Assembly (NCBI RefSeq): GCF_006345805.1
Contig: NW_021834146.1
Coordinates: 1-48,251, forward strand
Direction: 5' to 3'
DNA: 48,251 nucleotides
From: Octopus sinensis
Lineage: Eukaryota
Below are positions 3,922 through 47,003 of the stretch, piece by piece (the first letter of the stretch is position 1; each line of letters opens with the position of its first letter). Below the pieces are notes generated by a model. It was not told the origin of the DNA. It ran no database searches and was given only the letters and a program-made list of their open reading frames with translations. Made by a program: the position numbers and the translations under genes.

Positions 3922-4093
3922 CATAGTTTTTTCTTTTGCATCATTAGTTCCATAGGAAACACCATAGAAAAGACCATCGAATGTGTCCGGATTCACTTTG
4001 GAAATACCAATACCAAGATTAGAATAGATAGCTGTGACTTGCTGCTCCTCCAGTGGAATCTTTTCTGTGATTTCTTGTATAAGATCCAGCAAT
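3922..4093 (-). CDS. Exon, GAIN-like region (LLDLIQEITEKIPLEEQQVTAIYSNLGIGISKVNPDTFDGLFYGVSYGTNDAKEKTM)
   Basis: Acceptor ttttctcacag and donor ATG|gtacca. 172 nt, phase 2-0. Joins exon 5292-5064 in frame (AG+A = Arg). Confidence 0.85.
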
Positions 4094-4307
4094 CTGTGAG
4101 AAAATCAAGAAAACGACTTTCCATTAACAATGTGTTTCGAATACGTAATTAGCTTTAGGTGTAATTACACTAATTATTTCGCTTAACAAATTTTTGAATG
4201 CTACTCTTGCTTCTATTTCTTCTGTTGTTTCTAGCTTAGCATTGAAGCAGTAACTTTTATTATCTATGCCGCTCCAAATATGACCGCGGGATCTATTGCT
4301 ATTACTT

Positions 4308-4433
4308 TTCTTCTTCTTCTTCTTCTTCTTCTTCTTCTTCTTCTTCTTCTTCTTCTTATATTATTATTATTATTATTATTATTATTATTATTATTATTAT
4401 TGTTATATTATTATTATTATTATTATTATTATT
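4308..4433. repeat. (TTC)n/(TTA)n microsatellite
   Basis: Directly visible. Confidence 0.95.
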
Positions 4434-4773
4434 CAGTAGTCTTATTTTTATAGTGTGCTTTCACCTCACTACCGAGCGCTTCTCTGTGTGCCTTGGGTAT
4501 GTGCTGTGGTTTGTTGTGATGCTCTGATGGTTACTTTATTCAAAGTGTTTTACGTAGGATGTGTGCAGGGCCTAGTAGTACTATTTTCTGTAAGTATTGT
4601 ATATTTGGTTTTGGTATGTATTTGTCTGAATATTTTTTATCATACCTAATGCGCCTACTATGATAGGAATTGTTTCTGTTTTTAGATTCCACGTTCGAGT
4701 TACCTCTATTTCCAGGTCTTTGTATTTTGAAAGTTTCTCCGTTCCTTTTAGAGACCCGTTGTCATCTACTGGT
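4434..4773 (-). mobile_element. R4/Dong-like LINE 3' fragment with (TAA)n on both sides
   Basis: The reverse complement matches the 3' end of the element at about 31140-31497. Confidence 0.85.
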
Positions 4774-5063
4774 ATTATTATTATTATTATTATTATTATT
4801 ATTATTATTAATTATTATTATTATTTATTATTATTATTATTATTATTATTATTATTATTATATATTATTATTATTATATTATTATTATTTATTATTATTT
4901 ATTTTTATTATCATTATTTTTATTATTATTATTATCATTATTATTATTATTACTATTTTTATTATTATTATTATTATTCTACCACCACCACCACTACTAC
5001 TCCTACTACTACTACTTCTACTACTACTAATACTACTACTATCAAAAGCGATTTGAATATTAC

Positions 5064-5292
5064 CTGTTGGCACTGCTATTCTCTTGTTCTGTCTCGGTCA
5101 GAACCTCCTCTGGTATGTTTAACAAATTGTTGATACTACGAAGAGAGTGGTTCAAAGTTATATTGGCCGACACAGTCGATACAAGTGGCACCATTTTCTC
5201 GTGAAGGTCTACAGCCAATTCAACATCTTCTTTGAAATACACTGGTTTCTGGGATACATCTAAAATCTCCTCCAAAGTACTGTCGATGTTTC
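5064..5292 (-). CDS. Exon, helical GAIN subdomain A-like (NIDSTLEEILDVSQKPVYFKEDVELAVDLHEKMVPL...TEQENSSAN)
   Basis: Acceptor-like ttttccatttcag at 5293 and donor AACAG|gtaata. 229 nt, phase 1-2. The frame is also open further upstream through the Thr-rich tract, so the true 5' boundary is uncertain. Confidence 0.8.
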
Positions 5293-5339
5293 CTGAAATG
5301 GAAAATTTAACATGAAATTTAAGGGAATTACAGTTGCTC

Positions 5340-43653: not shown

Positions 43654-44959
43654 TAGTTAGTTAGTTAGTTAGTTAATTTGGCTCAAAAGCAAATTGCAAG
43701 GACATGTAGGGGGACATGGAGTTAAGTATAGGGTGGTGTTCATGTAAAGAATTCAGGCCACTTGAGGTCCAGGGAGGCTTTGAACAAAGCGGTCGTCGGC
43801 ATCTTCACCATCTCGTCTGGCAGCTTGTTCCACGGATCCGCAACCCGGACGAAGAAATCTCCTGTCCTTCGATTAAGATGAAATCGTCGCAGGTAGAGCT
43901 TTTCGGAATGACTCCGCAGCCGACGCTCTGGAGCAGGAGTGAAGAACAGCTCTTTCGAGATGCTGTATGTCTTTGAGGAGATAAGGAGAAGAGGCTTGAA
44001 TCCCATACTCCAATATGGGTCTCACCAGCGTGACATAGAGTGGTAGGAATATGGCTGCCGTGAGCATTCCGAATGACCGTCGAATCAAGAACAGAATTCC
44101 GCGTGCTTTGTTGGCAGCATGGACGCACTGGACCGAAGGCGAAAAGGAGGAATCCACCAAGATACCCAGGTCCTTTACCTGATCGGTCCTCTCCAGCAGC
44201 AGACGACCCGGCTCGAAATCAAGTTGAGTTGCAGGAGTAGAGCCGACAGGCAGATGACAATTATCAACAGATAGTCATTGACATGTTCAGACACAATCAA
44301 ATAAATATAGCACGAATATGAAAAGTGATTATGACTTCAAGTAATAGGGAGTGAGAACAAATAGAAATCAGGGAATATTTAAATTAAAGACACATTATAT
44401 TCCTCATGTATAAACGACAACATTCAAAGGACTTACAGAGTTTCTAAGCTGTGAAGGTTTTGAAACATTACTTTCTCAATGTTCGAAATTTTATTGTTCT
44501 TAAGATATCTGAAGCAGGAAAAACTTTGACACGTTCAGACACAGGTCCCAATCGTTAGACCACTTTCAAATTTGGTGGAGGCATCGACGAAGATCCTCTA
44601 TATTACCGCGAGGAGCGACCAGTTTGATATCGTCGGCAAATAGAAGGGTGTGTTGCGTGAGGTCGTCGGGCAAGTCATTTATGAAGACTAAGAACAACAA
44701 GGGCCCAAGCACTGAACCTTGAGGCACGCCACTGCTCGCACTGGAGACTTCGGACCGCGAACCATTTACTTGGACTTGGAAGGAGCGATCTGAGAGGAAG
44801 GCACCAACCCATCGTACAATATCCGGATGGAAACTATATGCTTGAAGCTTGACAAGTAATAGGCGGTGGTTTACCGAGTCAAAAGCTTTGGCAAAGTCCA
44901 ATAAAACGATGTCAACAGCATCACTATCATCGAGGATGCGCGTCACCAATTCTTCCATT
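43654..44959 (-). mobile_element. CR1-like LINE fragment, copy 2, split by a 263-bp insertion
   Basis: Same 5' truncation point and internal deletion as copy 1. Insertion at 44260-44522. Confidence 0.92.
44437..44508 (-). CDS. LRR exon, type B, inside the CR1 insertion (YLKNNKISNIEKVMFQNLHSLETL)
   Basis: 72 nt, phase 2-2, with ttttcctgcttcag and ct|gtaagt retained. Confidence 0.75.
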
Positions 44960-45023
44960 ACTAGTATATATCATCATCAAATATTACTTTCAAACAGAGT
45001 ATCAGGAAACTGAACGAACTTAC

Positions 45024-45095
45024 AATATCTTTAAATTCTTAAACCGCGAGAATATACCTTGTTTGATGGTTGAAATGTTGTTGGCACCAAGATAC
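45024..45095 (-). CDS. LRR exon, type A (YLGANNISTIKQGIFSRFKNLKIL)
   Basis: 72 nt, phase 2-2, canonical splice sites. Confidence 0.88.
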
Positions 45096-45637
45096 CTGTT
45101 GCAGTAAAGAACGAGTAAAAATTATTAAATGGGAAAATAGTTGTGATACTACAAAAAGAAGAAGAAGAAGAGAAGAAGAAGAAGAAGGAGAAGAAGAATG
45201 AGAAGAAGAAGGAGAAGAAGAAGAAGAAGAAGAAGAAGAAGAAGAAGAAGAAGAAGAAGAAGAAGAAGAGAAGAAGAAGAAGAATCAGGCGAAATTATTA
45301 CATGGAAGTGTGGACAAATAACCACACGGCACCACAGAATAAAGAGAACAACGTGAAACAAACAACAGTAGAATATACATAAGTATTATATTAACACTGC
45401 AGACACACTCATACATATATGAACATACACGTTTTCAGGAATAAACTTTTGATGCAGACAATTATCAACAGATAGTCATTGACATGTTCAGACACAATCA
45501 AATAAATATAGCACGAATATGAAAAGTGATTATGACTTCAAGTAATAGGGAGTGAGAACAAATAGAAATCAGGGAATATTTAAATTAAAGACACATTATA
45601 TTCCTCATGTATAAACGACAACATTCAAAGGACTTAC

Positions 45638-45707
45638 AGAGTTTCTAAGCTGTGAAGGTCTTGAAACATTACTTTCTCATGTTCGAATTTTATTGTTCTT
45701 AAGATAT
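45638..45707 (-). CDS. LRR exon, type B, 70 nt (restores to YLKNNKISNIEKVMFQDLHSLETL)
   Basis: Splice sites are intact. There are two 1-nt deletions in T runs relative to 44508-44437. Confidence 0.72.
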
Positions 45708-46931
45708 CTGAAGCAGGAAAAAATGTTGCTTATTTTGACGTAGTATGGAATTGCCATAAAATATGAATATTGTTTCTTTTTGTATAGGAAGAAAACCATA
45801 GAAAATAAAATGACAAGAAGAAGGTGAAGAAGATGAAGAGGAAGGAGAAGAGGAAGATGAAAAAGAAGAAGAAGAAGAAGACGAAGAAAGAAGAAGAAGA
45901 GATGAAGAGAAAAAGAAGAAAGAAGAAGGTAGATGAGGAGGAGGAGGAGAAGAAGAAGAAGAAGAAGGAGGAGAAGGAGGAGGAGGAGGAGGAGAGAGGA
46001 GAAGAAGAAAAAGAAGAAGATGAAAAAAAGAAGGAGAAGAAGAAGAAGAAGAAGAAAAAGGTATAGGAGGAGGAGGAGGAGGAGGAGATGGAGGAGGAGA
46101 TGGAGGAGGAGGAGGAGGAGGAGGAAAAGAAGAACCAGGTGGAGGAGAAGAAGAAGAAGAAGAAGAAAAAGAAGAAGACGTAGAAGAAGAAGAAGAAAAA
46201 AGAGAAGGTAGAAGAGGAGGAGCATGAGGTAAAGGAGGATGAGGAGGAGGATGGCGATGATGCGAGGAAGAAGAAGAAGAAGAAGAAGATAAAGAAGAAA
46301 AGAAGAATAGAAGAAGAAGGAAGAGGAGAAGAAGAAGAAGAAAAGAAGAAGAAAGAGAAGGAGAAGAAGGAGAAGAAGGAGAAGGAGAGAAGAAGAAGAA
46401 GAAGATAAAGATAAGAGAAGAAGTTGATTGAAGAAGAAGAAGAATCAGTAGAAGAAGAGAAGAAGAAGAAGATGGGATGAGGAGGAGGAGGAGGAGAAGA
46501 AGAAGAGAAGAAAAAAAGGAGAAGATGAAGAAAAAGAAGAAGAAGAAGAAGAAAAAAAAGGTAGAGGAGGAGGAGGAGGAGGAGGAAAAGAAGAACCAGG
46601 TGAGAGGAGGAAGAAGAAGAAAAGAAGAAAAGAAGAAGAAGTAGAAGAAGATGAAGAAAAACACGAGAAGTTAAGAGAGGAGCATGAGGTTAAAGGAGGA
46701 TGAGGAGGAGAGATGGCGATGATCGAGGAAGATAAGAAGAAGAAGAAGAATAAGAAATAAAGAAAGAAGAGAATAGAAGAAGAGGAAAGTGGAGAAGAAG
46801 AAGAAGAAGAGGAAGAAAAAGAGAAGAAAAGGAGAAGAAGGAGAGAAGAAGAAGAAGAAGGAGAAGAAGAAGAAGAAGCAGCATCAAAGTATACATTTAG
46901 ATAATAGTATTAAGAAAATGAACGAACTTAC

Positions 46932-47003
46932 AATGTTTTTAAATTCGAAATCCCCGTGAAGGTACCTTCTTCGATGGTTGAAATGTAGTTATCTCGCAGA
47001 TCT
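46932..47003 (-). CDS. LRR exon, type A'' (DLRDNYISTIEEGTFTGISNLKTL)
   Basis: Acceptor ctttactgctatag and donor tt|gtaagt. 72 nt, phase 2-2. Confidence 0.88.

Follow-up and report, generated by a model that had tools for sequence, protein, structure and literature searches.

The window, by which we mean the whole 48,251-nucleotide stretch of DNA analysed here, is an unplaced 48-kb Octopus sinensis scaffold that bears the central portion of a single gene, LOC115230658. Twelve exons spliced from the minus strand reproduced the partial RefSeq model of this gene, XP_036355650.1 (P0177), residue for residue, an agreement far beyond chance. Exon limits were refined under an AG/GT constraint, and all 12 used exons are open and have canonical AG/GT sites. 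Position 47003 is the acceptor of the first leucine-rich repeat (LRR) exon and 3922/3921 is the true donor of the last exon; both coincide with the limits given in an initial annotation made from the sequence alone. The RefSeq model runs past the donor at 3922 to a stop codon, so that its coding sequence ends at 3886 (last model exon 4093–3886). The initial annotation had also proposed an in-frame splice from an LRRCT exon (27157–27000) directly to a three-finger domain (22174–22083 and 20655–20472). This splice was borne out, with a RefSeq acceptor 21 nucleotides (nt) upstream, at 22195, and the spliced protein, which that annotation had suggested assembling, is XP_036355650.1, with nine further exons. 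A second O. sinensis scaffold, VCDQ01005852.1 (L006, 48,326 bp), is 99.4–99.6% identical to the window over its entire length; most likely the pair represents two haplotypes of the same region. Its sister model is numbered as a separate gene, LOC115230659, so that a haplotig has probably been counted as an extra gene.

In the spliced product, four LRRs are followed by an LRRCT-type cap, a segment of Ly6/uPAR (LU) type, a SEA-like domain of ~97 residues and subdomain A of a GAIN domain (Table 1). We conclude that the window gene is, with high probability, one receptor gene and a member of an octopus-specific expansion of ADGRG-type adhesion G protein-coupled receptors (GPCRs) with the order LRR-LRRCT-LU-SEA-like-GAIN. 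The signal peptide, the LRRNT and further LRR exons on the 5′ side, and the rest of GAIN, the GPS and the seven-transmembrane (7TM) region on the 3′ side, would lie beyond the scaffold ends. The LRR exons are in phase 2-2, and LU (92 + 184 = 276 nt) and the SEA-like domain (83 + 53 + 155 = 291 nt) are phase 1-1 cassettes. The window exons are 58–92% identical to paralogues from three Octopus species, and a protein search with the spliced exons of the initial annotation returned Octopus proteins only.

Table 1. Features of the window, in the order of transcription of the gene; retrotransposon fragments outside the 3′ end are given last.
Feature	Coordinates	Strand	Remarks
LRR exon 1 of the partial RefSeq model	46932..47003	-	72 nt, phase 2-2; placed by splice sites and identity to the model
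LRR exon-like unit, frameshifted	45638..45707	-	70 nt; unused by the model; same lesion in VCDQ01005852.1
Intact LRR exon unit	45024..45095	-	72 nt; unused by the model
LRR exon 2 of P0177	44437..44508	-	reverse-transcriptase fragment abuts the acceptor (at 44509)
LRR exon-like unit, frameshifted	41822..41891	-	70 nt; unused; same lesion in VCDQ01005852.1
Intact LRR exon unit	39410..39481	-	72 nt; unused in the window model; allele used in P0001, the model of the twin scaffold
LRR exon 3 of the model	38746..38817	-	
LRR exon 4 (last) of the model	33708..33779	-	
LRRCT-type four-cysteine cap exon	27000..27157	-	CxC...C...C; follows the last repeat
LU exon 1	22083..22195	-	alternative acceptor at 22174, 21 nt from 22195
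LU exon 2	20472..20655	-	ends in CCxxxxCN
SEA-like (ferredoxin-like) exon 1	16608..16690	-	
SEA-like exon 2	14086..14138	-	
SEA-like exon 3	7710..7864	-	
(ACT)n/(ACC)n intronic microsatellite	5363..5531	-	coding in no model
GAIN subdomain A exon 1	5064..5292	-	
GAIN exon 2	3922..4093	-	subdomain A ends and B begins here; read-through past the donor in the model
Non-LTR retrotransposon fragment	1716..3806	-	RVT_1, zf-RVT; from the last exon to the scaffold end region
Other non-LTR retrotransposon fragments	23644-23922 (-), 29094-31127 (+), 37856-38680 (-), ~43.7-45.0 kb (-), ~47.7-48.25 kb (-)		Pfam RVT_1, zf-RVT

The LRR exons seen in the initial annotation are real, but the array consists of eight exon units of the 72-nt type, of which six are intact and two are frameshifted at 70 nt, and the model uses four. 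Pfam LRR_8 matched the spliced window product with E = 5.5e-27. The repeats run into a cap exon with the CxC...C...C cysteine arrangement of an LRRCT. Pfam LRRCT gave no match to this exon in the spliced product; the UniRef name of the paralogue P0024 is 'LRRCT domain-containing'. LRRNT was seen only in full-length relatives. From 36000 to 48251 the locus is built of ~6-kb repeats, 97–100% identical to one another, each with two LRR exon units and a reverse-transcriptase fragment of a long interspersed nuclear element (LINE). Extended low-complexity tracts, rich in purines and strongly strand-skewed, separate the repeats. RefSeq isoforms of an O. sinensis paralogue (P0031, P0187–P0191) have 477, 501 and 525 residues, and the step of 24 residues equals one 72-nt LRR exon, which suggests that single-repeat LRR exons are used alternatively in that paralogue.

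The LU segment, of 85 residues, starts with LxCxxC, ends with CCxxxxCN and has 12 cysteines that are invariant across 14 diverse members (C3, C6, C11, C19, C26, C43, C49, C60, C69, C72, C73 and C78); the pattern is present in 25 distinct family sequences. A profile of the segment had only four matches in the PDB, all of them three-finger proteins: LYPD1, the ACVR1 ectodomain (twice) and Lynx1. The top match, LYPD1 (E = 0.006), covers the full length with all cysteines aligned. When the 14 members were scanned one by one against Pfam, the matches were below threshold and mostly to three-finger families, namely Activin_recp (three of the 14 members, best E = 5.5e-4), Toxin_TOLIP, UPAR_LY6_2 and CD59, and these were the only families matched by more than one member. 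The window's own LU copy, scanned alone, had no Pfam match. SUPERFAMILY entry SSF57302, which we take to be the snake-toxin-like superfamily, provides a further, independent match. Ritschard et al. 2019 (PMC6408891) list it among their InterProScan results, with E = 5.7e-6, at residues 136–215 of the paralogue A0A0L8GYR2, which is the LU position.

From the cysteine framework, the PDB profile and SSF57302, the three-finger assignment of the initial annotation holds at the level of sequence, and the segment is predicted to be a Ly6/uPAR-type three-finger domain. LU proteins (LYPD1/Lynx2, Lynx1 and CD59, as well as TGF-beta/activin receptor ectodomains) have the same cysteine framework and the C-terminal CCxxxxCN; the octopus LU has an extra disulfide pair, as does LYPD1. 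Unlike the free-standing LU proteins, which are secreted or GPI-anchored, the octopus LU is an internal receptor module encoded as a two-exon, phase 1-1 cassette. The models of the two haplotypes differ in the acceptor of LU exon 1 (22195 or 22174), so that IYLYSVD-type residues before the domain are present or absent. Another O. sinensis protein, P0003 (385 residues, 'slit homolog 1-like'), ends 14 residues past LU in an out-of-frame reading of SEA-like exon 1, at a point corresponding to window 16690–16664; a frameshifted paralogue and a secreted LRR-LU isoform are the two readings of this model.

Between LU and GAIN, three exons overlooked in the initial annotation encode a 97-residue beta-alpha-beta-beta-alpha-beta domain. 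An AlphaFold2 (AF2) model of this domain had a predicted local distance difference test score (pLDDT) of 89 and a predicted template modelling score (pTM) of 0.81, with the element order E-H-E-E-H-(H)-E. We use the label 'SEA-like' because of this fold class and because the position matches that of SEA in ADGRG6. Pfam SEA was matched by one of 13 members (E = 0.007), a sequence-profile search of the PDB gave no true match, the matches to designed LRR proteins being spurious, and no GSVVV-like autoproteolysis motif was visible between strands 2 and 3 in the member alignment. Membership of the domain in the SEA family is putative.

The two 3′ exons, described in the initial annotation as GAIN-like and of ADGRG type, matched positions 4–121 of the 210 positions of Pfam GAIN with E = 7e-4 and 19.5 bits, below the gathering cut-off of 26.5; for the window product, E ranged from 7e-4 to 5e-3. 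Their best PDB match was the GAIN domain of ADGRG6 (E = 0.19), and they encode no more of the domain than subdomain A and the first part of B. They are 52–64% identical to P0018 and P0023, which run on into GPS and 7tm_2. The threonine-rich stalk that had been placed before GAIN is not supported: the sole run that could encode threonine is the intronic microsatellite just upstream of the 5292 acceptor, which lies outside all models, and we rejected it as coding sequence. Its length differs at a related O. vulgaris locus, and no Thr-rich stretch precedes GAIN in any paralogue or transcript-derived protein examined.

Relatives that extend over the whole receptor were retrieved by exhaustive HMMER search. 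By Pfam, LRR, GPS and 7tm_2 are present in a single chain in P0037, P0059, P0062 and P0093, all of which have the LU pattern, and P0175, P0171, P0062 and P0093 combine LRR, LU, GPS and 7tm_2 in one chain. The O. bimaculoides protein XP_052821851.1 (1535 residues) also has a signal peptide, an LRRNT and a C-terminal Death domain. In one full-length O. bimaculoides member, P0175/P0037, a Death domain stands at the C-terminus after a Ser/Thr/Gln-rich repeat; this is unusual for a GPCR and appears in the list of Ritschard et al. The GPS of the relatives reads CSCNHLTSF in P0062 and P0175 and CECIHLTNF in P0093 (Pfam GPS E ~1e-13), and their 7tm_2 matches have E = 1e-23 to 1e-41; a 7TM region is also present as exons at the O. 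vulgaris locus L001 (CATOCA020000001.1). P0093 and P0178 are encoded on three contigs of 4.2–4.4 kb (L003–L005) from three sequencing runs, and since these contigs are intron-less they represent mRNAs. P0093 is colinear with octopus P0062, at 37% identity over 1038 columns, in the order LRR-LRRCT-LU-SEA-like-HormR-GAIN-GPS-7TM. The models P0008, P0024 and P0002, from three species, bridge N-terminal modules (LRR or LU) to GAIN. Among named sequences, the LRR-LRRCT-LU-...-GAIN architecture was found only in Octopus; a profile search with five full-length members and a single-protein search with P0093 yielded no named relatives, and LRR words swamped both. Modules are skipped in frame in some paralogue models, P0026 being without LU and P0002 without the SEA-like domain.

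Several observations weigh against placing the window gene in this family as one receptor gene. Support for a single chain comes from transcripts and gene models of relatives, not from transcripts of the window locus. The window gene model terminates by read-through, both haplotype scaffolds carry the same frameshifts in two of the eight LRR exon units, and to the left of 3919 the window contains a LINE fragment instead of any similarity to GAIN subdomain B, GPS or 7TM. A search for a HormR exon found none in the window, in contrast to most paralogues. At the level of single domains, AF2 applied to LU alone (11 sequences) gave a pLDDT of 43.6, too poor for a fold search, and Foldseek on the SEA-like model returned generic ferredoxin-like folds only, with no E below 1e-3. 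Finally, in many paralogue models the chain is divided between two genes, an LRR-LU one called 'slit-like' and another called 'ADGRG6-like'; the names on the split models include slit-like, decorin-like and chaoptin, and we read the splits as annotation fragmentation.

If those splits were taken at face value, gene prediction would have fused two adjacent genes, one for a secreted LRR-LU protein and one for an adhesion GPCR with its start at the SEA-like or GAIN exons. Many paralogue models do stop after LU or begin at the SEA-like or GAIN exons, under slit-like, decorin-like and ADGRG6-like names. The intron-less transcript contigs of a relative nevertheless encode the entire chain, full-length O. 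bimaculoides models exist, and the models P0008, P0024 and P0002, which come from three species, link LRR or LU with GAIN. Moreover, the exons of the SEA-like and GAIN parts have neither a start codon nor a signal peptide of their own, and their phases match. We regard a fusion of two genes as very improbable.

The 3′ end bears on a second alternative, in which the window copy is a decaying or truncated duplicate that makes no 7TM receptor; its product would then be no more than a secreted LRR-LU-SEA-like-GAIN-A fragment that terminates where the read-through meets a stop codon. Read-through ends the RefSeq models on both haplotype scaffolds, and likewise P0002 of O. bimaculoides, from a cluster in which the longest listed contig measures ~12 Mb. 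The last exon is followed immediately by a LINE fragment, the two frameshifted LRR exon units are compatible with decay, and the 36–48-kb region is made of rearranged, near-identical 6-kb repeats. On the other hand, all 12 used exons are open with canonical splice sites, and read-through ends are the usual output of gene predictors where evidence stops. The scaffold itself ends 3.9 kb downstream of the last exon, within the LINE fragment. At L001 the next GAIN exon follows 4.2 kb downstream, the GPS at ~10 kb and TM1–7 at ~11–28 kb; the absence of GPS and 7TM from the window is therefore expected. A truncated copy is unlikely in our judgement, though less so than a fusion of two genes, and we retain the reading of a single receptor gene that continues beyond the scaffold.

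L001 probably represents a paralogue and not the ortholog, as it is only 83–89% identical to the window. Its GPS (L001 23932–24096) reads CSCDRLKSFAVLM in place of CSCxHLTSFALLM, with other residues instead of His and Thr at the cleavage site (variant CSCDRLKSF, RL|K), and this copy may lack self-cleavage. The TM5–7 exon at L001 41006–41410 is mistranslated in the models P0011 and P0029, which follow a wrong frame there and run out into unrelated sequence; in its proper frame the exon is open and shares 50% identity with TM5–7 of P0062. Several paralogue models without 7TM have a short terminal exon in common (...GNGTEDRTAETNF or ...GNETENIAAETNF; L002 94858–94905 and L001 45078–45125), of which none was found in the window. 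The composition of the window, its microsatellites and its many reverse-transcriptase open reading frames are those of animal nuclear DNA, with non-LTR retrotransposon fragments (Pfam RVT_1, zf-RVT) in introns and after the last exon. No Rfam family and no tRNA was found in it.

Assignment to ADGRG type was made with P0062, a paralogue, in place of the window product: among its matches, ADGRG2, ADGRG6, ADGRG3 and ADGRG4 stand ahead of ADGRL, ADGRE, ADGRD and ADGRF. Compared with solved structures, the GAIN/7TM part of P0062 matched ADGRG2 at 2e-68 and ADGRG6 at 2e-65, and the extracellular region of ADGRG6 was matched at 4e-22. Among solved structures, the GAIN/7TM core of the family thus appears closest to ADGRG2 and ADGRG6, in line with the type guessed in the initial annotation; ADGRG6 (GPR126) and ADGRG2, vertebrate adhesion GPCRs of family VIII, are the best matches to the HormR, GAIN and 7TM of the family. 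ADGRG6 has SEA, HormR and GAIN ahead of its 7TM. Its N-terminus is composed of CUB and pentraxin domains, whereas that of the octopus family is LRRNT-LRR-LRRCT-LU; the octopus SEA-like domain is only weakly similar to SEA and is without the GSVVV-type motif, and the window gene is without HormR. ADGRA2 and ADGRA3 (GPR124 and GPR125) likewise have N-terminal LRRs and an LRRCT ahead of HormR-GAIN-7TM, and the RefSeq name of one paralogue is 'ADGRA3'. We rejected ADGRA membership: no Ig domain was found in the window product or in the full-length relatives, the window has no HormR, and the 7TM is nearer to ADGRG. LU in the octopus family occupies the position of Ig in ADGRA. In LGR4–6 genes, one 72-nt exon encodes each leucine-rich repeat. 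These receptors differ in having a rhodopsin-class 7TM and no GAIN, and their likeness to the window gene is one of gene structure only.

The family has been described before. Ritschard et al. 2019 (PMC6408891) reported an octopus-specific expansion of GPCRs, group 3, with GPS, an adhesion 7TM, LRR in five of 22 members and one Death domain. The members of the group were reported to cluster in the genome, to bear marks of positive selection and to be expressed in suckers, skin and axial nerve cord (PMC6408891). Three paralogues of the window gene, A0A0L8FLR8, A0A0L8HDZ7 and A0A0L8GYR2, are tabulated there as class B, group 3 (PMC6408891), and the family of the window gene is this group. Although Table S3 of that study has SSF57302 at the LU position, its text mentions no three-finger, SEA-like or HormR domain (PMC6408891), and O. 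sinensis, the species of the window gene, was not included. A Ly6/uPAR or three-finger domain is mentioned neither in the text of Ritschard et al. nor in the 2019 reclassification of adhesion GPCRs, and the first 300,000 of the ~412,000 characters of the 2026 consortium review contain no three-finger/Ly6-uPAR domain. Full-text literature searches returned no report of an LU domain in adhesion GPCRs. The initial annotation had suggested an uncharacterised, lineage-specific LRR-LU-GAIN family. The architecture is real and, among named sequences, was found only in Octopus, but the family is published and annotated; what is new is the undescribed LU and SEA-like modules only.

From the relatives and the biology of adhesion GPCRs, the LRR and LU modules would recognise a partner in the matrix or on a different cell, and the SEA-like module, joined by HormR in most paralogues, would act as a spacer. 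GAIN would hold a tethered agonist of TSFALLMDV type, in most paralogues cleaving at HL|T, and release or exposure of this agonist would activate the 7TM. Since LU and the SEA-like domain are phase 1-1 and the LRR exons phase 2-2, the modules can be skipped in frame, as in paralogue models. Free Ly6/Lynx proteins bind nicotinic-type receptors, and octopus suckers sense by touch via diverged nicotinic-receptor-like chemotactile receptors. Because of these two precedents, and because the family is reportedly expressed in suckers, skin and axial nerve cord, one could speculate that the LU module docks on nicotinic-receptor-like channels, a partner that would be unique among adhesion GPCRs, and that skipping of LRR-exon, LU and SEA-like cassettes diversifies the repertoire. 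The proposal is drawn by analogy, and we give it little chance of being correct.

The window taken alone is a small gain, since it holds part of an already annotated gene that has many paralogues. An adhesion GPCR is defined by the partners that its outer domains bind. If LU were shown to stand between the LRR solenoid and GAIN across a lineage-specific expansion, it would add a new domain type to the adhesion GPCR repertoire and an example of exon-shuffled, phase-symmetric cassettes in receptor evolution, and it would be a candidate recognition module in the sucker and arm-nerve-cord tissue of the octopus.

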